The translations under genes and the position numbers were made by a program. The notes beneath the pieces are model-generated. The model saw only the letters and a program-made list of their open reading frames with translations, searched no databases and was not told the DNA's origin. Below are positions 22,555 to 35,557 of a DNA stretch of 64,000 nucleotides, piece by piece; position 1 is the stretch's first letter, and the number at the start of each line of letters is the position of its first letter. This DNA is from Hyaloraphidium curvatum SAG 235-1. Lineage: Eukaryota; Fungi; Monoblepharomycota. The stretch lies in NCBI GenBank assembly GCA_025558095.1, contig JAIVFI010000019.1:62001-126000 (forward strand), given 5' to 3'.

Positions 22555-23240
22555 AATCTTCCCGCTACCTTCTGAGTTGCATTCACATGCGATGCTTCTC
22601 AAACACTTAAGAAGCGACAGTGATGGAGCCCGTAGGCGCGCCGGTTCGCGTCGGCTCGCCTTTCTTTACTCAGGTGACAGACGCCATAGCGTAGATCGAT
22701 GCTGTTTCCGTTTCGTACGACCGTTTGTTGGGAAAGATTGAGCTGCGGCCTCGTACATGCCTAGACCGACATTAGAAACCCGGACATGCAAAGTCCAGGG
22801 TCACAAAGGCGCCGCCGCCGCGGAGGAAGCTCCAAAGCGCCACGCCGACAGTCAGCATAGTCACGACCATGGTCCTCAGAGTCGTAAATGTGACGACGAA
22901 TCCGAGGATCCGGCCCTTCCACTGGTCGACGTCCATATAGGTTTTCAGCAACGGTCGTCAGCCTCAATGAGCGCGAGGTATGCCTCCAGCCGCGAAGTCG
23001 GGGGGAAGCGCCGCCGTGCCTTTGCACAAAGCTCGCGAAGCGACCGACGGGCGGTGCGATACAGCTCCGTGACGCCCGAGATGTGCTGGTTGGCCACGGC
23101 AACGTTGACCATGTCCGACGCGGTTCCAACGCCGAGGTACGCGAACATGCCGAGGACGTACGGGACGCAGTTGCCCACGGCGACGTTGATGACAGCGGCG
23201 AGGAGGGTGCCGAGGACGTAGAAGCCGAGGTAGACGGCGC
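22555..23240. repeat. Direct segmental duplicate of ~26290-26990 (coding 3' end plus 3' flank)
   Basis: Shared aatcttcccgctacctt...cacatgcgatg...ctggtcgacgtccat blocks in both places. Confidence 0.85.
22772..23240 (-). pseudogene. 5'-truncated, frameshifted copy of the 7-TM gene at 26521-28116 (TM5-TM7 part)
   Basis: Near-identical to 26521-26990, but with indels (e.g. ~22950) and no upstream coding sequence. Confidence 0.85.
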
Positions 23241-23779
23241 TAAGATGCAAGGTCAGAGCGGCTTGTCAAGATCGGTCGTCCGAATCTGATCTCGCGCACG
23301 TGGCAGGTGGCTTTCTACTGCTCGAAGGGGTGCCAGAAGGCCGACTGGCCGAGACACAAGGACCACTGCGTGGCTCCTCCGCTCCCGAAGTAACTGGCCG
23401 GTAGGATTGCATTGCGCGGCTGCGCTCGATTCGGTGCGGTGTCTGGCTGCAAAGGTATACTACGTTTCTACTACGTTTGTGTCCAGCCGTGGACAGCAGC
23501 GAGACTTGCCCCGTAGATTTAGTCCCGTGTATCCGCATTTGACCTCCATCAGACCCAGACACTGCCCCCCGCGGATCCCAGCCCGGTGGCCTCGCCGATC
23601 CCCGGTGGTAGCCCACCGGTGCTGTTGCACCGACCTAGCACATGTGCTAAAGGCGGGCGGTCTGCGCACAGCCCGCGGACGAATCAAGGACCCGCCCAGC
23701 CGCCAGCCGCGCCCGCTGACTCAAACCACGCATTCATTCGAACAACTCCAACGAACACACCACTCTCCGCTCTCTCTCA

Positions 23780-25355: not shown

Positions 25356-26520
25356 CATTTCGAACGCACTCCAAACACTACGTACGCGATCGAGGATACC
25401 CTACTCGCCTCGTCATTCAGGTGTTCCACAAGATGTGGCGCCACCTCCCTGACTCAAAAGCCCACCTCTTGGACGACCGCGACCGTAACTCATTCGCGAA
25501 GGAACTTAAATGCTCCTTATACCCTCTCGAATCTGCCTTTGCGAACTCATGAGCCCCACCTCCTCCGGCGCTTGGGCGCCGATCTATTCATCCAATCTCT
25601 CCCATATACCTCCACATAGATAATGATCTCCTCAATCCACGAAACCTACGTCTCGCTTCTGCATGACGGCTCGTCGATCCACTTTGAAATGTCAGGTGCG
25701 TGCCCTCGGTCCGTTGCTTCTTCGGTCGCGGCGTAGCCTTCCCATCCTATGAATAGCCCTCCAACAGGGGAAGGAATCAGGCCGGTCCTCTATCGCGTGC
25801 AATGGTTTTACCTCGGTCGTTGATGCTGGTAGTTGAGTTCAGGTCCGATCTTGTCCCGTACTGGGACAGTCAGCGGAGGACTTGAGCCCCGACCGCCCGA
25901 GCACAACAACCTCCAAAGCAAACACCCACGCAACCTCGGACAGCCCCTTCTCAGCGTACCGGTGCCGCACGAGAGACTCAAGGCGCACTCTCACGGCCCC
26001 TGCTGTTGGACGATCTCGGCTATCGAACCCCTTGAGACGTCGCTCACCGAATTGCCGCTCCCTCCCCCCCTGCGACCTCTGTTTGCTCGTCAACACTGCT
26101 CGCGGGGAACCCGCTCTCAACTTTCCACGGCTAGGTGAGTACTCGATCGGCGTCAGCAGCCCGGGCTCTGGTAGGTGTGTTTATCGGCAAACGTCCTTCC
26201 GAAAAAGGCCTAGGGAGCTTTCGCGTGAAGCGCCGAGTATCTTGGCGTGTGATTGCTTGACCAAAGCTTGAACCACCGCCGCCTGCGAAATCTTCCCGCT
26301 ACCTTAGAGTTGCATCACATGCGATGTTTCTCAAACACGTAAGAAGAGACGGTGATATCGCAGCGCCTGGCTCGCGTCGGCTCGCTTTTCTTTACACAAG
26401 ACCCGTTCTGAGGGGGCACTGCTGACAGTCGCCATGGCGTAGATGGATGTTGTTGTTTCCGTTTGTACACCGTTTGCTGGGAAAGATTGAGCTGCAGCCT
26501 CGTACATGCCTAGACCGACA

Positions 26521-28116
26521 TTAGAGACCCGGACACGCAAAGTCCAGGGTAACAAAGGTGCCGCCGCCGCGGAGGATGCTCCAAAGCGCTACGCCGACAG
26601 TCAGCATCGTGACGGCCATGCTCCTCAGAGTCGCAAACGTGACGACGAAGCCGAGCACCCGGCCTTTCCACTGGTCGACGTCCATGTAGCTCTTCAGCAC
26701 ACGGTCGTCAGCCTCAATAAGCGCGAGGCATGCCTCCAGCCGCGAAGTCGGAGGGAAGCGCCGCCGTGCCTTTGCAGAAAGCTCGCGAAGCGACCGACGG
26801 GCGGTGCGATACAGCTCCGTGACGCCTGAGATGTGCTGATTGGCCACGGCAACGTTGACCATGTCCGACGCGGCTCCAACGCCGAGGTACGCGAAAATGC
26901 CGAGGACGTACGCTGGGACGCAGTTGCCCACGGCGACGTTAGTGACGGCGGCGAGGAGGGTGCCGAGGACGTAGAAGCCGAGGTAGACGGCCAGGAACTC
27001 CATGAAAGTGAAGCGCTGTCGCCACAGCGCACTGAGCTCCTCGTGAAGTTGTTGGTACAGCTCGTAGTCGTCCGAAGGCTGGGCCGCCATTGCACCTTCC
27101 TTGTTGAGCGTGCCCGAGATGGGCTCGCCATGTGCGGATTTTCGAACCAGCTTCTCCCCAGGGCGGGGCTCCGAATCCAATTCCGAGAACAAGTTCCGTT
27201 CGTGGCGCGAAACCAGGGAATCCAGGGCGATCCAGACGGCACGGCGCTGTAGCCGCCGGGAGAGTTCGAGGCTGGCCACATTGGCCCGGAAAGTGGACCC
27301 CAGGATGCTGATGTACCCGTTGTTGACCCACCACAGGGCAATAATCACGACAAGGGAGAGGATGCCCCACCACGTCCCAATGGCAACTTCCCCGAACGTG
27401 ATGGCCATCGTCCACACCATGCCGAACAGGCTGCTGACCGTCAGAAGGCAGATCCTGGCCACCAAATCCAAAATGGAGTAGCCAGCAACCCTCGACATGA
27501 CGTCCCCCACGCAGGCCGGGCAGGGGCACAGCCCATCGCCGTCCTCGTGCGCGAGGAGAGGGGAACCCTCGGGTTCCTGGCCAACTAGCTCCGTCCAGCG
27601 AACGACGCCGGACAGATTATGCCCTGATACATCCCCGTCCGATCCTTTCTTGTGGACCGCGAATCGCAGGCTGTAGCGCGTGAACAGCGGCGGCAGCAAG
27701 AGCATGACCACGTTCAAGGATAGCATCGCAGAGAAGCCACCCCAGTAGTTCCGGCTCGAAAAATGGGGGAGGAGGGTGTTCGCGTGCCACAGTGCCCCCA
27801 GCATGACGAAGACGGCCCCGAGCATTAGCAAGTTGCGGAGCAGAGAGCGACGCGCCCACGGCGCCAGCCACAGATTGAGGACGACGAGGGCGTGAAGAGG
27901 TTTGCAGGCAGAAAGAATGGACAGAAACTCGGGAAGGGGGAGCTTGGGCCGCACATGCCGTTCCGCGAACACCGCGCCGAACGTTGGAGGGAGCGGAGGG
28001 GAGGCGGGGAAGAGCGCGGCCCACTCGGCGTTCGAGAATCCCGGTTGGTCGACACGGGCTTTGTCCTCAACGTCCAGCCCTAGTTCGGCGATGTGATTTG
28101 GCGGCGATTCCGCCAT
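26521..28116 (-). CDS. 7-TM membrane protein, gustatory-receptor-like/7TMIC candidate, intronless (paralog A)
   Basis: 531 aa, seven hydrophobic segments with alternating short and long loops, CPCPAC in loop 2-3, C-terminal KGRVLGFVVTFATLRSMAVTMLTVGVALWSIL. Confidence 0.8.
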   Translation of the reverse strand: MAESPPNHIAELGLDVEDKARVDQPGFSNAEWAALFPASPPLPPTFGAVFAERHVRPKLPLPEFLSILSACKPLHALVVLNLWLAPWARRSLLRNLLMLGAVFVMLGALWHANTLLPHFSSRNYWGGFSAMLSLNVVMLLLPPLFTRYSLRFAVHKKGSDGDVSGHNLSGVVRWTELVGQEPEGSPLLAHEDGDGLCPCPACVGDVMSRVAGYSILDLVARICLLTVSSLFGMVWTMAITFGEVAIGTWWGILSLVVIIALWWVNNGYISILGSTFRANVASLELSRRLQRRAVWIALDSLVSRHERNLFSELDSEPRPGEKLVRKSAHGEPISGTLNKEGAMAAQPSDDYELYQQLHEELSALWRQRFTFMEFLAVYLGFYVLGTLLAAVTNVAVGNCVPAYVLGIFAYLGVGAASDMVNVAVANQHISGVTELYRTARRSLRELSAKARRRFPPTSRLEACLALIEADDRVLKSYMDVDQWKGRVLGFVVTFATLRSMAVTMLTVGVALWSILRGGGTFVTLDFACPGL

Positions 28117-28241
28117 GGAGCCTCAGGTTGAAGAGGGGTGCGGACCGCAGTAGCGAGTTGGCTGCCGCGCGATCGACGTCACGTTTCGTTGTCTGGCCGT
28201 CTCCCACATCTAAATCGCGGAGCCGACCGCCGAAGTCGCCC

Positions 28242-29888
28242 ATGGAGGGCGCAACGCGTGAAGAAGCCGACAGCCGCGGCAACGGCGCGTCGGAAAAGCC
28301 GCCCCTCTCCTTCCTCACGGGGGATGAGCTCCTTTGCCTCCTGCCCGCTCCCGTGGCCCCCGCGGCCGGAATCGGCGTGCCAGCTCAAGAGGATCCCGCT
28401 GCGGCAGCCCGGAACGCGCGTCCGCTGACGGCCGCGGCGGTGAAAGAAGTCGTTGCCGCCGCGGAAGATCCGGTGCTGGAATGGTTGACGCGCATCTCTC
28501 TCGCCCTGGCCCCGTACGCGGCGCGTTCGAGGTTCCGGATCGGCCTGTGCCATCTTATCAGCATCTCTACCATCATTCCTTTCCTCTGGATTGCCGGGAT
28601 CCCGTATGGATTCGGCCGGAAACAGCTCGTTGCCACCACCGTGGCCTTCAGTCTCGAGTGCGCGTTTTATTCGTTGCTCGCTACGAACATCGGCTGGTTT
28701 GCGGGACGCCGAAGCGGGGCGCGACCGGCTCCGTCGAAGGAGGATGACCCGGAAGGAGGGGAAGCCGCAGGCGATAGCCCAGTCCCAGGCGGATTCTTTG
28801 CGGCCGCAACTCTCGACGTCTGGCCGGATTCGTCCTTCTGGCGGTACCTCATTCTCTGTCAATCCGGTGCACCCCGGAACCAGCTTTTCCTGATGCACAT
28901 TGATGCAGACGGTTCGAATTGCTGTTGCCCACGCAAATCCTGCGCCGGTTCGGTCGCATCCCGTGCCGGCCTTGTACGCAGTGTCACCCTCGCTTTCTTT
29001 TCGCTCGTGGTCTTGCTGAGCTACGTGACTAAGTTTTTTACGGCTATGGTGACCCTCGGCGGACAAATGTGGACGACCGCGTGGACGCTTGCGGGCATCC
29101 TTTGGATCCTTTCGTCTTGCAACAACGAATTTGTATCCACGTTCGGTGGTGCCGGAACCTCGGACAACCTGGCCGCGAGGGAACTTGAACGGAAACTCAC
29201 AGTCCGTGCCGTGCGTCGGTCATTGGAGGCCCTTGTGGAACGCCTTCAGGGCCTCGTGGAGGGGCCTGCTGATGCGAAGACAGCCGCATGTGAAAGATGG
29301 TACGCTTCTCTGGTTCCCCTTCTTGCAGCCAGGTGGCGACAGGACGTTCTCTTGCCGCAGTACGCCGCGCTAGCTGGAGTTTTCTTCATCGCCGAGACAA
29401 CTGCCTTCATCATTTACGTGGTACGTAACGTAATCCTGTCGATCCTCTGATGGCGTCTGAACCATCTTCAATCCTCGTTCCAGACCACGGGCAACTGCGT
29501 TCCAGTCTACGTGATCGCTCTGCTGTTGATGGGATACTCCGGTCTCATGTACCCCCTCTTCAACGCAGCGGTCGGCAACGGGCGCATCACGCAGACCACG
29601 GCCCTCCTCCGCTCGGCCTCTCTTTCCCTCAGCGAACTCGAGCTGGCGTGCACAGAAGCTCAGCAACCCCTTGCGCGCCGCATCGCGGCGCACCGGGCCA
29701 GGCTCCGCGACCTGGAGGAGGTCCACGTGGATGGTGCAGGCGTGCGGCTCTTCGGAGCGCGGGTTACGGCCAGCCTAGTGCGCAAGATAATGGCAGCCAC
29801 GGTGACGGCGGTGTTTGCAGCGTGGACGGTGCTTCGCGCCCTGGGGGTCGTGCTGACCATGGAAATGGTCTGTCCGGCGACGTCTTGA
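28242..29888 (+). CDS. 7-TM membrane protein, divergent paralog B, 2 exons
   Basis: Shared motifs CCCPRKSCAG, LERKLTVRAV..SLEALV, GNCVPVYV, RLFGARVTASLVRKI..VFAAWTVLR...MVCP; intron 29421-29483. Confidence 0.8.
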
Positions 29889-30038
29889 TTTTGCGATGCA
29901 CGACCAATCGCAGCACTCACTGACGCTAACGTCGCATGCAAATCGTCGCTTATCTAGAAAGTTTTGCTGAATGTGTATGATTTGGCCGTTCTATTGACGT
30001 CTGACCATGTCGCCAGCTCCGATCCCCGGCCGCCTTGC

Positions 30039-31604
30039 CTATGCAGAAAGTAAATACAGACCCGGACATGCAAAATCCGGGGTCACAAAGGTACCCCCGT
30101 TGCGAAGGATAGTCCACAGCGCCACGCCGGCCGTCAACATCGTGGCGAGCACGCTCCTCAGCGCCGCAAAGGTGACCACGAACCCGAGGATCCTGCCCTT
30201 CCACTGCTCCACGTCCGTGTAGCTCTCCAGCACCCGATCATCCGCCTCCACGAGGGCCAGGCAGGTTTCGAGCCGCGGGCTCGGGGGGAGCTGGCGCCTC
30301 GCGCCGGCGGAGATCTCGCGCAGCGCGCGGCGGGCGGATCGGTACAGCTCCGTGACCCCCGAGATGTGCTGGTTGGCCACGGCGACGTTGATCATGTCCG
30401 ACGCGGTTCCAACGCCGAGGTAGGCGAACAAGCCGAGCACGTATGTGGGAACGCAGTTGCCGACGGCGACGTTGATCACTGCGGCCAAGACGATCCCGAG
30501 GACGTAGAAGCCGAGGTAGACCGCCAGGAACTCCATGAAGGTGAAGCGCTGGCGCCAGAGCGCGCTTAGCTCCTCGTGGAGCCCCTGGTAGAGCTCGCGC
30601 TTCGAACCGTGCATCAGGGCGGGTTCGGCGACCGATCCCCAAGCAAGTTTCTCATCGGAGCCCAGCTCCGCGTCCGACGCCGCAGACAACCTCTGCTCGT
30701 GCCGCGACACGAGGGCATCCAGTGCCATCCAAACCGCACGGCGCTGCAGCCTCCGCGAGAGATCCAGGCTGGCCACGTTGGCGCGGAACTGCGCACCGAG
30801 GATGCTGACGTAACCGTTGTTGATCCACACGACGGCGATCAGCAGCACCAGGGAGAGGACGCCCCACCAAGTGCGCGAGACCTCGCGGAAGGTGATCCCC
30901 ATGGTCCACACCGTTGTGAAGAGGCCCGCGGCCGCCATCAGGCACAATCTCGCCCCCACGTCGGCGAACGAGTAGGCGGCGACCCTCGACATGACGTCCC
31001 CCACGCACGCCGGGCAGGGGCACAGGTCGTCCCCGTCCTTGTGCGCCAAAAGCGAGGCATCCGGTTCCCCGGCGACGAGTTCGGCCCAGCGGACGACCGC
31101 GGATAGGTTGTGGGCCGACATGTCGCCGTCCGGGTCCTTCCTGTAGGCCGCGAAGCGCAGCCTGTACCGGGTGAAGAGCGGCGGCAAGAAAAGCATGACG
31201 ACGTCCCAGGATACTATCGCCGCGAATCCGCCCCAGTAATTTCGGTTGGAAAAGATCGGAAGGAGGCTGTTCGCGTACCACAGCGCTCCCAGCATGACGA
31301 TATTGGCCCCAAACATAAGCACGTTGCGGAGGAGCGAGCGGCGCGCCCACGGTGCCAGCCACAAGTTGAGCACCACGAGGGCATGCAAAGATCTTGAGGC
31401 AGAGAGAATCGAGAGGAAGCGCGGCATGGGGAGCTTGGACCGCGCATGGCGTTCGCTCGCGGGTCCGAACGTCGGGGGAAGTGGGGGGGAGGACGGGAAG
31501 AGCGCGGCCCACTCCGCGTCCGAGAATCCCGGCGGGCCGCAATTCGGCTTCGTCTCGATGTCGAGCGAACACTCTGCGCGGCCGTTTGGCGGCGGGTCCG
31601 CCAT
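30039..31604 (-). CDS. 7-TM membrane protein, paralog C (close to A), intronless
   Basis: 521 aa, colinear and highly similar to 26521-28116 along its length. Confidence 0.8.
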   Translation of the reverse strand: MADPPPNGRAECSLDIETKPNCGPPGFSDAEWAALFPSSPPLPPTFGPASERHARSKLPMPRFLSILSASRSLHALVVLNLWLAPWARRSLLRNVLMFGANIVMLGALWYANSLLPIFSNRNYWGGFAAIVSWDVVMLFLPPLFTRYRLRFAAYRKDPDGDMSAHNLSAVVRWAELVAGEPDASLLAHKDGDDLCPCPACVGDVMSRVAAYSFADVGARLCLMAAAGLFTTVWTMGITFREVSRTWWGVLSLVLLIAVVWINNGYVSILGAQFRANVASLDLSRRLQRRAVWMALDALVSRHEQRLSAASDAELGSDEKLAWGSVAEPALMHGSKRELYQGLHEELSALWRQRFTFMEFLAVYLGFYVLGIVLAAVINVAVGNCVPTYVLGLFAYLGVGTASDMINVAVANQHISGVTELYRSARRALREISAGARRQLPPSPRLETCLALVEADDRVLESYTDVEQWKGRILGFVVTFAALRSVLATMLTAGVALWTILRNGGTFVTPDFACPGLYLLSA

Positions 31605-31988
31605 GGAGCAGCGGTAAGGCTGACGGGGGACAGTCCTTGCCTCGCCACCCTCGCCACCTCGACGTTACACCTGATGAACCGTTTCAAGCTTCACACCGGG
31701 CATCTCTATCTCATGTTCGTTCTTTGCTGCTGTTCATCGGCATATTGCTTCGGCGACGCAACTGCAGGCATGTGCTCGAGTCTCGGCGATTGATGAGTGG
31801 CGAGAAGAGGAACAGGCAGACAGGCGGATGCACTTCACGGGCCAGATCCTCAGCATCGTGGAATACTACACATCTCGGTTTCGAAGCCTGATCGGGTCCG
31901 CTCGCGGTTCTCACGTGCGCCTGCCGACGGGTTTTCAAGGTTGCCGCGCCGGGGGCTTTGGGGCCACGCCACAGAAACCAGGAACGCG

Positions 31989-34900
31989 ATGGCGTCGCCG
32001 CCGCCGGCCGGGCCCGGAGCCGCGGGCGCCGGCGGGCCGCTGCCTGAGCCGCCGCGGCCGGCGCGCGTGGTCACGCTGACGGACGTCGACGCGGGGGAGA
32101 CGGTGCTCGCGCCGCCCGCCACGCCCGACACGGAGCTCCCGCCGTACTCGGCCGCGCCCGCCGCCGGCGAGGCGTCGTCGGGCGTCGCGCGGCTGCGTGT
32201 GTGGGAGGCGCTGGCAGCAGACTCGGACGACGACTCGCTCGGCTCGCGGGGGTCGCGGTCGCCCAGCCCCGACACGCTGTCGCGGCCGGCCGATCAGAGC
32301 TCCGATCGCGGCGACCATCTGAGCAGCCCGAGAGATGGCAGCCAGTCGCGGAGCGCGTCGCCGGGCCCGTTCTCGCGTGCCGAGCAGGCCGCCCGCATGG
32401 GCCTATCGGGGCTTTCGCTAGAGCCGCGCAAGGCGCTGTCGGAGGCGTGGACTCTCCCGGCGTCGTTCGACGAGAAGAAGGTGCAGCCGCCTCGGACGCC
32501 GACGGCCCCGCCCCGGACGGGGTCGGCCAGCCCGGTCTTTTCCAGCAAACCGGGGCGGAACTTGAAAGGTGGAGAGCTGTACGGCACGCTCAAGATCGAG
32601 AGTAAGTGCTCGCTGGTTGCTAGTTTAATGTTACTTTGTGCTCATCGTTCATCTACTCGCAACTCTCCTTCTCTGCGGTCGCTAGTCGTCAGCGTCACGG
32701 ACCTCCCCGTGCGGCGCCGTTCGACCCTCACCAAGGCACTCTTGCTCAACCAGAAGCCCGAGCGCCGGTGGACGCCTTTTGTCGTGGTCTCGTACGGTGC
32801 GTCGACCTACAAGACAAAGGTCCGCGCCCAGCTCCCTGTGCCCTACGGCTCCGACACGGCCTCGGTGGTCTTCAACGCCAACATGCCCGACGTCGCCGTG
32901 CTCCGCTCCCAGCTGCACTGGGACGTGGTCTTCTCCCTCTGGGACTCGCAGGCCATCGGAACCAACAAGGCCATCGGGACCAGCCTGAGCGTGGAGGTCG
33001 AGGACCTCGTGGACCCCGTGCAGCGAGACGGCGGCGGCTACTGGGAGACGTCGCGGCAGGCCCCGCCGGAGCGCCGGAGCTTCGACGACGTGCAGCGGCC
33101 CGTCACCCCGCCGAGCATGCCGGACGACGGCGTCCCCGTCGCCCGTGCCAAGTCGTGGACCAACCTGGACGTTTTCGACGGGAGCCAGGCGGACATTGAT
33201 CCTCCTTCGCCCACGTCGCGGACAACCGCGGACCTCAACCTGATGATCCCCTACCCGACCACCGACGAGGTGCCGCTGGCGATGCCTGGCCCCAGCGCCG
33301 GCAACGGCAAGCGAAAGGGCTGGCTCCGCTCCCGGCGCACCCGCTCGCGGTCGGCCTCCCCCTCGCCCGCCAAATCCTCGGGCCAGACCTCTGGCGGGTC
33401 GGACCAGGAATCCGACCGCGCGGACCGCAAGGCCTTCCGCCGGCCCATGTCGCCGCTGTTCCGCCGCTCGGGGTCGTTCACGCCCCCGGCGTCGCCGGCG
33501 ATCCCGGGCCTGCGCTTCCCGGTGATGAGGGAGAAGAAGCTGCTGGTGGAGCAGCCGCCGATCGTGGATTCGGACGGGAGGGTGGAGGAGCTGCCGCCCA
33601 TCACGCTCAACATCCGGTACGGGTTCAGCCCGAGGTTCCGTGGGTTGCTCTTTCCTTGCAAACTGGCACAGCAGCTCTGCTCACTGGTCGATTCCGCCTT
33701 TCAGATCTCATCCGCAACTTTATCCTCACCGTGCTCCACAACATCCGCGCCCGGCAGCTCGCCACCGGGTCCCCCATCGGCGCCCCGAACCAGATGATCG
33801 ACCCCACCGCGCCCATCACGCACATCTCCATCGTCGACGTCCTCCTCATCAACGCCGAACGGCTGGGCGGCTGGTTCGCCGACGAGGACCTGGACGCCAT
33901 CTTCGTGGGCCGGGATGAGATCACGGTCGACGAGTTTGTGGAGCGCTGGGACGCAAGGGACTGGGAATCGCGCGAGGCCGAGCTCCCCCCGAGGCCGCCC
34001 AGCCCCGGACCGAAGAGCAAGGCGGCGGGCAAGGAGAAGGAAGGGAACGGGAACGGGTCCGCGTCGGCGGCGCCGGGGACGCCGGCACCCGAGGATGCCT
34101 TTGCCGAGCTGGCCTGCTTCATCTGCGAGCAGCCCTTCCCCCCCGCCGATCCGACCTCTGCGCTGCCCTACTCGGTGCAGCAGCTGAACCACCTCCTCGT
34201 CTGCGCCAGCAGGGATTACTCCGCCGCCGCGACGAGCATGCTCAAGCGCCGCGAGTTCCTCACCGAATCCGCCGCCGCCCGGGGCCTCTACACCTCGCTG
34301 CTCGCGCGCCTGGGGCTGGGCACCTACCGCGTCGGCAAGCACGAGGGGTTCATCCTCGTGCAGAACCGCGAGACGGGGCAGCTGGAGGAGGAGTACATCC
34401 CGTCCTACGTCCGGCTCGGGATCCAGCTGCTCTACCGGAGCCGCGTGTCGCGGTCCATCGTCGAGACGAACACCATCGCCGGGCTGTTCCGCAACACCAC
34501 CGCTGGGCACGGGGCGCGGTACGACGACCCGCGGTCGGCGTCGGGGATCGCAAAGTTCATCCGGACGTACCGGATCAACGTGGACGAGGTGGAGAAGCCG
34601 GTGGCCGAGTACAGGACGCTGAACGAGTTCTTCACGCGGAGGCTCAGGGCCGGGGCGAGGAAGCTCGACGCGCCCGGGGACCCGGGGGTGCTGGTGTCCA
34701 TGGCGGACTGCAGGCTGACGTGCTTCGCGTCGGTGAACGAGGCGACGCAGGTGTGGATCAAGGGGTCGGGGTTCACCATCACTAGGCTGCTGGGCGGCGA
34801 TGCGGCGATGGGGAAGGAGTTTGCGGACTCGACGGTGGTGATCTTCAGGTGCGAGGCGAGCGCAGGCGAGGTGTTTCGTTGCCTTGACACTTCGCTGGCT

Positions 34901-35557
34901 CTTCTTGGCAGACTGGCACCCTGCGACTACCATCGATTCCATTCGCCGGTCGACGGAAAGGTCGTGGGGTTCGTGCCGGTCAAGAGCCCTGGACTATAGT
35001 GAGTCGGTTGCCTGCAATAGCAGATGGAGTCCTAACAATCGATCTCTTCTCACTCCTAGCTATACCGTCAACCCGGTGGGTAGCTTTCCGCATTCTCTCC
35101 TCCGATCATTCTGACTGTTTCGCGGCATTCAGATGGCCGTCCGCTCCCCCGTCGACGTCTTTGGCGACAACGTGCGCGAGATCTGCTACGTCGACACGGG
35201 CCCCGACCGGTTCGGCCTCGTGGCGATCGTGGCCATCGGCGCCATGCTTGTCGGCAGCATCGTGTGGACGGTCAAGGAGGGGCAGGAGCTAAAGCGCATG
35301 GACGAGATGGGCATGTTCAAGTTCGGCGGGAGCACGGGTGGGTCTCCTCTCTCCATGCGTGCTTATTGTATCTGACTCGTTTTCACCCTACAGTCGTCAT
35401 GCTGATCCAGAAGGGGATCGCTCAGCTGGACGAGGATCTGCTTGCCAACAGCGCCAAGGCCCTGGAGACCGTGGTGCAGGTCGGCAACAGGATCGGGGAG
35501 CTCGTGCACGGGAACGGGGGAGACTGGGAGGAGCAGGGAGATGCGGGTGCTGGTTGA
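31989..35557 (+). CDS. PSD2: Phosphatidylserine decarboxylase 2 (C2-domain type), multi-exon
   Basis: C2-like PFVVVSYG..YKT, TLNEFFTRRLRAGAR, SMADCRL, WIKGSGF, FRLAPCDYHRFHSPVDG, AIGAMLVGSI, FKFGGST autocleavage motif. Confidence 0.92.

Follow-up and report, generated by a model that had tools for sequence, protein, structure and literature searches.

A greatly expanded Hyaloraphidium curvatum protein family with a predicted 7TMIC fold and no detectable sequence similarity to insect chemoreceptors

Introduction

Insect odorant receptors (OR) and gustatory receptors (GR) are targets for vector and pest control, and their deep origin is still debated. The structural criteria for the 7TMIC superfamily set out by Benton & Himmel 2023 (PMC9998090) are seven transmembrane (TM) helices, an inner N-terminus, longer intracellular loops, long TM4-6, a split TM7 and a tetramer with a TM7b pore. 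Candidates outside animals and plants amount to a handful, mostly with one to six copies per species (PMC7746228). The fungal GRLs are SpunGRL1 and SpalGRL1, one per species in two species of Spizellomyces; iterative searches starting with GR or DUF3537 sequences brought both to light (Benton et al. 2020, PMC7746228). In a later structural screen "Fungi" was limited to Chytridiomycota and Blastocladiomycota, and the supplement of that preprint holds no mention of Hyaloraphidium, Gonapodya or fungal phyla (Himmel et al., bioRxiv 10.1101/2023.08.30.555482).

The literature searched contained no paper joining Hyaloraphidium and gustatory receptors. Hyaloraphidium curvatum is an aquatic monoblepharid chytrid, a non-motile, non-flagellated planktonic unicell. 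We know of no chemotactic behaviour in this organism, nor of functional data for any fungal 7TMIC. Here we analyse a gene cluster in a 64-kb window (the whole stretch of DNA examined, 64,000 nucleotides) of its genome, for which an original prediction had proposed insect GR/OR-like channels.

Results

Gene organization

The window contains three intact paralogs (A, B and C) and a broken fourth copy of the same family:

22772-23565, minus strand: broken fourth copy (genome search, with 1 TGA; tblastn; ORF pieces 22945-23250 and 22772-22951)
26521-28116, minus strand: gene A, intronless ORF of 531 aa, predicted 7TMIC-fold protein
28117-28238, no strand: divergent A/B intergenic region, 122 bp from ATG to ATG (start-codon coordinates)
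28239-29420, plus strand: gene B exon 1, 394 codons, running from the N-terminus into the middle of TM5 (ORF and first ATG)
29421-29483, plus strand: predicted gene B intron, 63 nt, GTACGT...CAG, with an in-frame TGA inside (read from the sequence)
29484-29888, plus strand: gene B exon 2, 134 codons and stop; end of TM5, TM6, TM7a, TM7b and the C-terminal C-P (ORF, sequence)
30039-31604, minus strand: gene C, intronless ORF of 521 aa

The original prediction of three paralogs of about 520-530 aa agrees with these lengths (531, 528 and 521 aa). The genes are clustered as proposed, but they do not form a strict tandem array, as B is divergent from A, and the 122 bp between their start codons are probably a shared bidirectional promoter. 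An Rfam scan of the window gave no match.

Gene B was compared exon by exon. The last codon of exon 1 is complete and is followed directly by GTACGT; the frame restarts in exon 2 at TTGNCVP, which corresponds to the family motif N-x-A-x-G-x-C-(I/V)-P, giving a protein of 394 + 134 = 528 aa. Its identity to A is about 27-32% (32% over the IL1 motif and TM3-4), and the region 28215-29882 was matched in tblastn by 40 of the 42 paralogs.

Genes A and C share 71% identity, and identical entries for both proteins are present in the protein database. Their dN/dS of 0.19 (dS 0.9) shows that this pair is under purifying selection. The broken copy lies just beyond the 26521-31604 cluster and matches gene A residues ~260-531, with 85-88% identity over the last ~160 residues. 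It carries a frameshift near 22945-22951, its upstream part is degraded and the N-terminal half is missing.

Family size and divergence

In the 31.9 Mb genome the back-translated signature H-x3-D-x2-C-P-C was counted 312 times, compared with 2 for the control, which points to about 400 copies of the Hyaloraphidium family. In an exhaustive HMMER search 469 clusters fell within E ≤ 1e-3 and 418 within E ≤ 1e-10, and at least about 123 distinct family loci were resolved in the organism's own genome (from the best 124 of 791 candidates). The hundreds of copies, mostly intronless, lie on nearly all contigs, both dispersed and locally clustered, and include pseudogene fragments; the genes adjoining them are ordinary unique genes. 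Among 30 sampled family proteins, 26 are NCBI entries of the form "hypothetical protein DFJ74DRAFT_..." of H. curvatum. The expanded repertoire of the original prediction was thus an understatement.

Paralogs are ~30% identical to each other, with saturated dS, which indicates that there was no recent burst of copies. Homologs in another species are likewise ~30% identical, compared with 74% for one housekeeping enzyme of the same two organisms. The further claim of rapid evolution holds for this comparison between species, but not for A and C, given their low dN/dS. The family member P0003, which fits the family profile better than any other member, has a homolog in another organism at 53% identity, the sole such clear case found. 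A word-index protein search with gene A or with the 42-sequence alignment recovered only A and C, the index being blind at ~30% identity, and a metagenome search for related loci with P0152 alone or with a 5-sequence alignment found none.

Topology and predicted helices

Hydropathy averaged over 42 paralogs showed six peaks, one of them double, corresponding to seven TM helices. In the AlphaFold2 (AF2) model of gene A the membrane helices are TM1 91-115, TM2 121-144, TM3 206-240, TM4 249-273, TM5 370-397, TM6 402-~423 and TM7b 494-517. The N-terminus is hydrophilic over ~90 aa and lacks a signal-peptide-like start, and short pre-TM1 helices occur at residues 61-88 of gene A. The inner loops (2-3, 4-5 and 6-7) average 68, 52 and 36 aa, and the outer loops (1-2, 3-4 and 5-6) 10, 8 and 4 aa. 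Across 113 paralogs, the mean number of Lys and Arg residues is 21.1 on the inner flanks versus 3.0 on the outer flanks. By the positive-inside rule, the topology is predicted to be N-in, inverted relative to that of GPCRs. The N-out, GPCR-like arrangement had been named in advance as the outcome that would speak against the original prediction. A GPCR reading was rejected: the charge distribution is N-in, GPCR chains reached a Foldseek probability of ≤ 0.09 at most, and none appeared in the VIA lists.

Judged by AF2 secondary structure and alignment ranges, TM4-6 are extended towards the cytoplasm, spanning 249-273 plus 280-310, 353-397 and 402-453 in gene A and 263-286 plus 292-323, 337-380 and 385-435 in P0003. 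The last helix is split in both models, which share the same helix layout: P0003 has segments 442-457 and 475-498, and the two segments of gene A, as assigned by DSSP of the model, are joined by a linker of 16 residues with a small hairpin:

26686-26745, minus strand: TM7a, gene A residues 458-477, cytoplasmic, in the position of the anchor domain
26566-26637, minus strand: TM7b, gene A residues 494-517

The averaged hydropathy and the AF2 models thus reproduce the layout first read from the letters, namely a hydrophilic N-terminus, a pre-TM1 segment, paired TM helices, long 2-3, 4-5 and 6-7 loops and a split last helix; the two peptide strings quoted for that helix are both present in the sequence. 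The G-F-x-I/V-T pattern is conserved in the 7a-7b linker of the family, but we found no evidence for it as a general 7TMIC hallmark. The absence of the TM7 motif TYhhhhhQF (TYxxxxxQF in the original prediction) was confirmed by per-column frequencies, with at most the Thr kept in the family.

Structure models and nearest folds

AF2 models were obtained without templates for gene A with 42 paralogs (pLDDT 86.4, pTM 0.85) and for P0003 with 113 paralogs (pLDDT 92.1, pTM 0.91). For both models, the top seven of 48,161 PDB representatives (VIA) were insect GR/OR/Orco chains, aligned sequentially over ~80-90% of the target; the next, unrelated rows covered ≤ 216 residues. Solved insect receptors of this kind include Gr43a (8jm9), BmGr9 (8vc1), MhOR5 (7lic) and AaegOR10 (8v02). 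Insect GR/OR/Orco chains also came first in Foldseek (probability up to 0.97, E 0.016-0.3), with TM-scores < 0.5 and an rmsd of 5-6 Å against the solved structures. The likeness to the Orco/GR fold that had been anticipated was therefore recovered, with insect receptors ranked first for two models. Solved TMEM39 chains were absent from the matches listed. Sequence identity in the structural alignments to insect receptors was 8-12%.

An ESM-Atlas shape search returned an unnamed eukaryotic 419-aa cluster (TM 0.54/0.65). Among the protein-language-model neighbours are clusters of DUF3537, 7tm_7, Trehalose_recp and SRR, and the DUF3537 clusters (0.90-0.91 by language-model features) are among the nearest named ones. 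No solved PHTF structure exists for comparison, to our knowledge. PHTF clusters (Class-B 7TMICs; Benton & Himmel 2023, Himmel et al. 2023) were found among neither the feature nor the shape neighbours.

Sequence-based searches gave no support from known families. The Pfam models 7tm_7 (PF08395), 7tm_6 (PF02949) and DUF3537 (PF12056) had no match at E ≤ 10 in 4 + 42 proteins, a six-frame genome search with PF08395 and PF12056 had none either (the control genomes were likewise blank), and a sequence-profile search of the PDB returned nothing relevant. Complex prediction with four copies of residues 285-531 and no alignment gave a score of 0.00, with the chain itself unfolded, an outcome that speaks neither for nor against tetramers.

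Conservation pattern and candidate sites

Conserved positions among the paralogs, given here in gene A numbering, include:

27511-27549, minus strand: signature H-x3-D-x2-C-P-C-x2-C, residues 190-202, in the cytoplasmic loop that leads into TM3 (113 paralogs)
26920-26922, minus strand: Cys399, in the 4-residue outer loop between TM5 and TM6, 99% conserved (paralog alignment)
26533-26535, minus strand: Cys528, C-P 97% conserved, in the C-terminal tail on the extracellular side (paralog alignment)

Within the signature, H190, C197, C199 and C202 are 99-100% and D194 95% conserved in 113 paralogs. This His/Asp/Cys3 cluster is probably a metal site. Cys399 and Cys528 probably form a disulfide that links the C-terminal tail to the TM5-6 loop; the strands 399-401 and 521-523 are the sole 3-residue strands in the gene A model.

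TM7b is the most conserved helix, with an entropy of 1.71 bits versus about 3.0 for TM1-4, the most variable. Its family consensus is R-T-x-x-V-T-x-x-T-V-x-V-G-L-W-S-x-L-R-G, and the conserved face consists of T499-T503-T506-G510-S513, together with R498 and R516. This Thr/Gly/Ser face is a candidate pore lining. In the 7a-7b linker, G489 is conserved at 97% and V492 at 77%.

Discussion

Judged by the structure models, the Hyaloraphidium family appears to be a new, sequence-orphan and greatly expanded branch of the 7TMIC superfamily. We infer channel activity and chemosensory function, and on balance lean towards the view that A, B and C are 7TMIC-fold members of a family of about 400 genes encoding tetrameric ligand-gated chemosensory channels. 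As in insect ORs and GRs, the cytoplasmic TM4-7a bundle would hold the subunits together as tetramers, and the conserved Thr/Gly/Ser face of TM7b would line a cation pore. Ligands would bind in a pocket formed by the outer half of TM1-4, and because this pocket varies, each paralog could translate the binding of a different small molecule from outside the cell directly into ion flux, providing a large chemosensory repertoire for a non-motile planktonic unicell. The cytoplasmic metal site and the Cys pair tethering the C-terminal tail, both probable, would be additions particular to this family. We offer more tentatively, as a possibility, that this is an independent, insect-scale repertoire of ~400 7TMIC ligand-gated, cell-autonomous chemoreceptors with their own cytoplasmic metal/redox site and maybe an Orco-like core member, P0003.

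The 7TMIC fold could also be real, whether homologous or not, in proteins that act as another kind of channel, a transporter or a scaffold, for example in organellar ion homeostasis, in redox or metal sensing through the Cys3-His cluster, or in self/non-self or anti-parasite recognition. We know of no function for the distant 7TMICs PHTF and DUF3537. The seven best PDB matches also fit such roles, the positions with the least variation are in a cytoplasmic loop outside the putative ligand pocket, the outer loops have only 4-10 residues, and channel function is unproven for most 7TMICs according to Benton and Himmel (PMC9998090). However, some 400 diverged paralogs with variable TM1-4 and a conserved TM7b follow the pattern of a receptor repertoire, unlike that of housekeeping channels, and turnover between related genomes is fast (~30% identity for the family, 74% for the one enzyme), so that we consider these roles, taken together, unlikely. 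That the family is a lineage-specific set of seven-helix proteins, resembling 7TMICs through convergence, chance or model bias, seems to us improbable. Such an origin would agree with the lack of any link to 7TMIC families by sequence or profile, with the low TM-scores and high rmsd against solved structures, and with family signatures (HD-CPC-C, and C-P twice) that are not known from 7TMICs. Against it, two independent models gave 7TMICs as seven of seven top matches with most of the target aligned sequentially, a TM7 split in two, which is rare, was found along with long TM4-6 and an N-in topology, and the DUF3537 and 7tm_7 clusters emerged independently among the language-model neighbours; the known fungal GRLs also retain just 1/4 TM7 motif positions.

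Two further readings were rejected. A Tmp39 cluster was the best named language-model match (0.94, 199-202/256 features), which would suggest a divergent family of TMEM39 (Pfam Tmp39)-like ER membrane proteins. This is very improbable, since Tmp39 was shared by only 1 of the 10 best named matches and flagged "probably wrong", the Pfam Tmp39 model had no match at E ≤ 10 in 42 members, and the ESM-Atlas shape search returned no Tmp39 cluster. The hundreds of mostly intronless copies over nearly all contigs, and the existence of pseudogene fragments, might be expected of mobile-element cargo or another selfish repeat, but this reading is scarcely credible: the 800-bp upstream and downstream flanks of 53 paralogs have no common sequence, and it was rejected on these unique flanks. 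The ~30% identity and saturated dS of the paralogs, the dN/dS of A versus C and the ordinary neighbouring genes also speak against it.

If the favoured reading of ligand-gated chemosensory channels is true, the family would exceed by far every other 7TMIC repertoire known outside animals and be a tractable microbial system for how 7TMICs sense chemicals. A sequence-orphan family with this predicted fold and ~400 copies in a single 32-Mb fungal genome indicates that large receptor-like 7TMIC expansions also exist outside animals with nervous systems, and that sequence-based surveys miss entire branches of the superfamily. Hundreds of compact, mostly intronless genes for ligand-gated channels from a culturable microbe would be of use for studying ligand recognition, gating, birth-and-death evolution of repertoires and sensing in planktonic fungi.

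Plant DUF3537 proteins (PF12056) and, by prediction, the present family both represent a 7TMIC fold outside animals; the plant families are small (4-12 genes), and PF12056 finds nothing in Hyaloraphidium. SpunGRL1 and SpalGRL1 are likewise 7TMIC candidates from fungi of chytrid grade, and they match the present family in secondary-structure layout and in keeping 1/4 TM7 motif positions, but they are single-copy genes as opposed to ~400, and the present family is invisible to GR and DUF3537 models. Relative to insect GRs and ORs, the Hyaloraphidium proteins have no detectable sequence similarity, no Pfam match and no TYhhhhhQF. They exceed the insect receptors in length by ~100-130 residues; the N-terminus measures 90 aa, and the first inner loop, which holds the invariant H/D/C3 cluster, 68 aa. 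One Cys in the TM5-6 loop and one in the C-terminal tail are conserved as a pair, and the proteins are encoded by mostly intronless genes of a unicellular fungus. Insect GR/OR/Orco proteins share with the predicted structures the seven N-in TM helices, short outer loops, a helix ahead of TM1 near the N-terminus, long TM4-6 that extend into the cytoplasm and a TM7 split into 7a and 7b, as well as the variable N-terminal half, the conserved TM7b, gene clusters, pseudogenes and the size of the repertoire.

Genes of the cluster and their neighbours

Three paralogous genes, A, B and C, lie between 26521 and 31604 in the window, as the original prediction had proposed. A fourth copy, 3 kb from gene A, lies outside the region that the prediction covered.

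22772-23565, minus strand: fourth copy, covering the equivalent of gene A residues ~260-531
26521-28116, minus strand: gene A, complete ORF of 531 aa
28239-29420, plus strand: gene B exon 1, first ATG at 28239, closing on a complete codon ahead of GTACGT
29421-29483, plus strand: gene B intron, 63 nt, GTACGT...CAG, with an in-frame TGA inside
29484-29888, plus strand: gene B exon 2, restarting in frame with the family motif TTGNCVP
30039-31604, minus strand: gene C, complete ORF of 521 aa

Full-length identity between genes A and C is 71%, and since identical 531- and 521-aa entries are present in the protein collection, these ORF calls correspond to existing gene models. Gene B (394 + 134 = 528 codons, analysed as two separate exons) sits between them on the opposite strand, with 122 bp between the A and B ATGs. 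It was matched by 40 of 42 family members in tblastn, shows 32% identity to gene A over 129 residues and 27% over residues 182-529, and is a distant paralog of A. The ORFs, the A/C identity and the tblastn matches of B bear out the proposal of three complete paralogs of one family.

The fourth copy is 85-88% identical to gene A across the last ~160 residues, but is 5'-truncated, with a frameshift near 22945-22951 and a degraded upstream part, and is a pseudogene fragment. Two antisense ORFs, at 22757-23221 (plus strand) over this copy and 26506-26829 (plus strand) over gene A, mirror each other and were rejected as genes, being duplication by-products.

Directly adjoining gene C, and diverging from it, is an ORF of 666 aa (31797-33797, plus strand) rich in Ser, Pro and Arg, which may encode a disordered regulatory protein or be a compositional artefact of a 70% GC region. 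An ORF at 33656-34999 (plus strand) holds ...HRFHSPVDG..., a motif known from phosphatidylserine decarboxylases; it probably corresponds to a single exon of a housekeeping gene with introns beside the cluster.

Copy number and arrangement in the genome

The window corresponds to positions 62001-126000 of contig 19 in the H. curvatum assembly (31.9 Mb, 55 contigs, ~65% G+C). A six-frame search of this assembly with gene A gave at least 136 matches (81 of 706 candidates scored), and a profile built from the C-terminal two-thirds matched at least 130 times, at no fewer than ~123 distinct loci and always with E <= 1e-15 (124 of 791 candidates scored). Back-translated H-x3-D-x2-C-P-C, a signature of the family, occurs 312 times in the genome, compared with 2 occurrences of the reversed control. 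Column frequencies indicate that ~74% of members should carry this exact form, implying ~400 copies, a density of roughly one every 75-80 kb. The repertoire is therefore expanded, as predicted.

Copies were found on at least 37 of the 55 contigs by the gene A search alone. Local arrays are frequent, with six signature motifs on both strands within ~33 kb at 704002-736677 of contig C1, and likewise at 784007-816948 of contig C5. About 14% of the profile-search rows contain an in-frame stop, for which a pseudogene, intron or frameshift is possible. Dispersal as cargo of a repeat element was ruled out, because the 800-bp sequences flanking 53 copies show no similarity to one another.

An exhaustive HMMER search of 1.84 billion representative sequences returned 469 clusters with E <= 1e-3, of which 418 reached <= 1e-10 and 297 reached <= 1e-30. 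Thirty family proteins were looked up, and for 26 of them the NCBI entry is a 'hypothetical protein DFJ74DRAFT_...' from Hyaloraphidium curvatum; in the first two samples, chosen regardless of composition, the figure was 19 of 20 H. curvatum models.

Predicted topology and conserved residues

Mean hydropathy over 42 paralogs peaks at residues ~94-113 (TM1), ~126-146 (TM2), ~215-238 (TM3) and ~249-270 (TM4), followed by a double peak at 372-422 (TM5/6) and TM7 at ~494-516. Among 113 paralogs, mean loop lengths are 68, 52 and 36 aa on the side of the N-terminus, versus 10, 8 and 4 aa on the opposite side, and membrane-near Lys+Arg number 21.1 and 3.0, respectively. By the positive-inside rule, the N-terminus and all long loops are thus predicted to be cytoplasmic, and the C-terminus outside. 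This orientation, the reverse of that of a GPCR, excludes GPCR topology and agrees with the inverted arrangement of long inner and short outer loops, without a signal peptide, that had been read from the sequence.

In the cytoplasmic loop directly ahead of TM3, the motif H-x3-D-x2-C-P-C-x2-C is nearly invariant (H190, C197, C199 and C202 conserved at 99-100%, D194 at 95%), and this His/Asp/Cys3 cluster is most simply explained as a metal site, probably for Zn. Two other Cys residues are conserved at 97-99%: C399 lies in the outer loop of four residues that links TM5 and TM6, and C528, usually followed by Pro, in the outer C-terminal tail. Both belong to the paired strands of the AlphaFold2 model, and likely form a disulfide.

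The second half of the last helix, TM7b, has the consensus R-T-x-x-V-T-x-x-T-V-x-V-G-L-W-S-x-L-R-G. The conserved T499, T503, T506, G510 and S513, bracketed by R498 and R516, are spaced 3-4 residues apart and so lie on one helical face, a candidate pore- or interface-lining face.

Predicted fold and superfamily relationship

AlphaFold2 models were generated without templates for gene A (42 genomic paralogs; pLDDT 86.4, pTM 0.85) and for P0003 (113 paralogs; pLDDT 92.1, pTM 0.91), the member closest to the family profile. Both contain a helix pair before TM1, a TM4 extended by a cytoplasmic helix (in A as far as residue 310), and very long TM5 (353-397) and TM6 (402-453). After these, a helix in the cytoplasm (458-477) is joined to the final membrane helix (494-517) by a 16-residue linker that contains a small hairpin, in accordance with the split last helix described earlier; residues 399-401 pair with 521-523 in a small two-strand element.

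For each model, the seven top structural matches among ~48,000 candidates were insect GR, OR or Orco structures of one small superfamily, the seven-transmembrane ion channels (7TMICs), aligned in full, which argues against chance resemblance. The rows below were coiled-coil and helical-repeat proteins, with 99-216 residues aligned. Foldseek, a different method, also placed GR/OR chains first, with probability up to 0.97 but weak E values (0.016-0.3) and TM scores of 0.25-0.42. The models thus agree with the Orco/GR-like fold initially suspected. An ESM-Atlas shape search gave TM scores of 0.54/0.65 over 364 residues to a eukaryotic cluster in which echinoderms are commonest. Language-model feature neighbours, which serve as leads only, include DUF3537 (0.90-0.91) and the 7tm_7, Trehalose_recp and SRR clusters (0.85-0.88).

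Published structural criteria for 7TMICs are seven TMs, an inside N-terminus and longer inner loops, with ORs/GRs as best reverse hits, long TM4-6 and a split TM7 (PMC9998090). For accepted distant members the scores are 11.8-12.9 in the case of PHTF proteins and 13.1/9.9 for T. trahens GRL3/4, compared with 2-4 for negative controls that have at least seven helices (PMC9998090). The modelled H. curvatum family displays all of these structural features, at the distant end of the range, and we consider genuine 7TMIC fold and kinship likely.

At the sequence level, Pfam matched neither the three window proteins (B entered exon by exon) nor any of 42 members at E <= 10, the 7tm_7 and DUF3537 models gave no match in six-frame searches of this genome or of control genomes, and PDB sequences searched with a profile likewise yielded none. 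TM7b lacks the TYhhhhhQF hallmark of GRs, as the original prediction had noted for the canonical ending. The family therefore falls outside the GR/GRL and DUF3537 sequence families, and would constitute a new 7TMIC branch, recognisable by fold only.

Conservation and homologs elsewhere

Comparison of A with C gave dS 0.90, dN 0.175 and dN/dS 0.19, showing purifying selection; divergence is greatest in TM3-4 (58% identity, dN/dS 0.27) and smallest in TM5-6 (86% identity). In the set of 113 paralogs, no helix comes close to TM7b in conservation, its column entropy being 1.71 bits versus ~3.0 for TM1-4. Insect receptor families have a conserved pore helix and a variable ligand-pocket half, a pattern that the H. 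curvatum family matches.

Three full-length homologs (P0042, P0060, P0073) came from Logan assemblies, two of them on SRR26194948 contigs of 48 and 74 kb (L057/L058) of a second, fungus-like genome (GC ~54%), with 53-56% G+C and fungal-type neighbours. A YVC1/TRPY1-type channel gene is situated 2 kb from one SRR26194948 member, and one of the homologs adjoins a PALP-family enzyme gene. The enzyme and its H. curvatum counterpart share 74% identity, whereas the family members show ~30% identity to any retrieved H. curvatum paralog, indicating that the family is present in a related organism and turns over fast. The predicted rapid evolution thus holds for turnover between organisms, but not for A and C, which are under purifying selection.

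A metagenomic fragment, P0152 (L056:237-1208; contig GC 53-56%; JGI samples 3300043314 and 3300050339), is 53% identical to P0003, a match hinting that P0003 may be conserved as a core or 'co-receptor-like' member.

H. curvatum contig C43, ~321262-322767: P0003, the sole member for which this analysis found a clear homolog in another organism

Possible function and comparison with known 7TMICs

By analogy with solved ORs and GRs, the subunits would form tetramers held together by the TM4-7a bundle in the cytoplasm, with TM7b lining a central cation pore that would open when a small molecule binds in the outer half of TM1-4 and TM6, where sequence varies. This analysis shows fold class, topology, conservation pattern, copy number and purifying selection; the full statement, 7TMIC fold and kinship together with the predicted receptor-channel function, we hold to be only slightly favoured.

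H. curvatum is a monoblepharid (chytrid-grade) fungus and a non-flagellated freshwater plankter. In the literature searched, we found no paper joining Hyaloraphidium with gustatory receptors. Two Spizellomyces species, with one gene each, account for the published fungal 7TMICs (PMC7746228), and a later structural screen names Chytridiomycota and Blastocladiomycota alone, with no expansion (bioRxiv 10.1101/2023.08.30.555482). The two chytrid GRLs likewise keep just one of four TM7 motif positions (PMC7746228), and share this weak motif retention with the H. curvatum family, but the latter is beyond sequence-level detection. It represents a new form of a known superfamily, greatly expanded and orphan at the sequence level.
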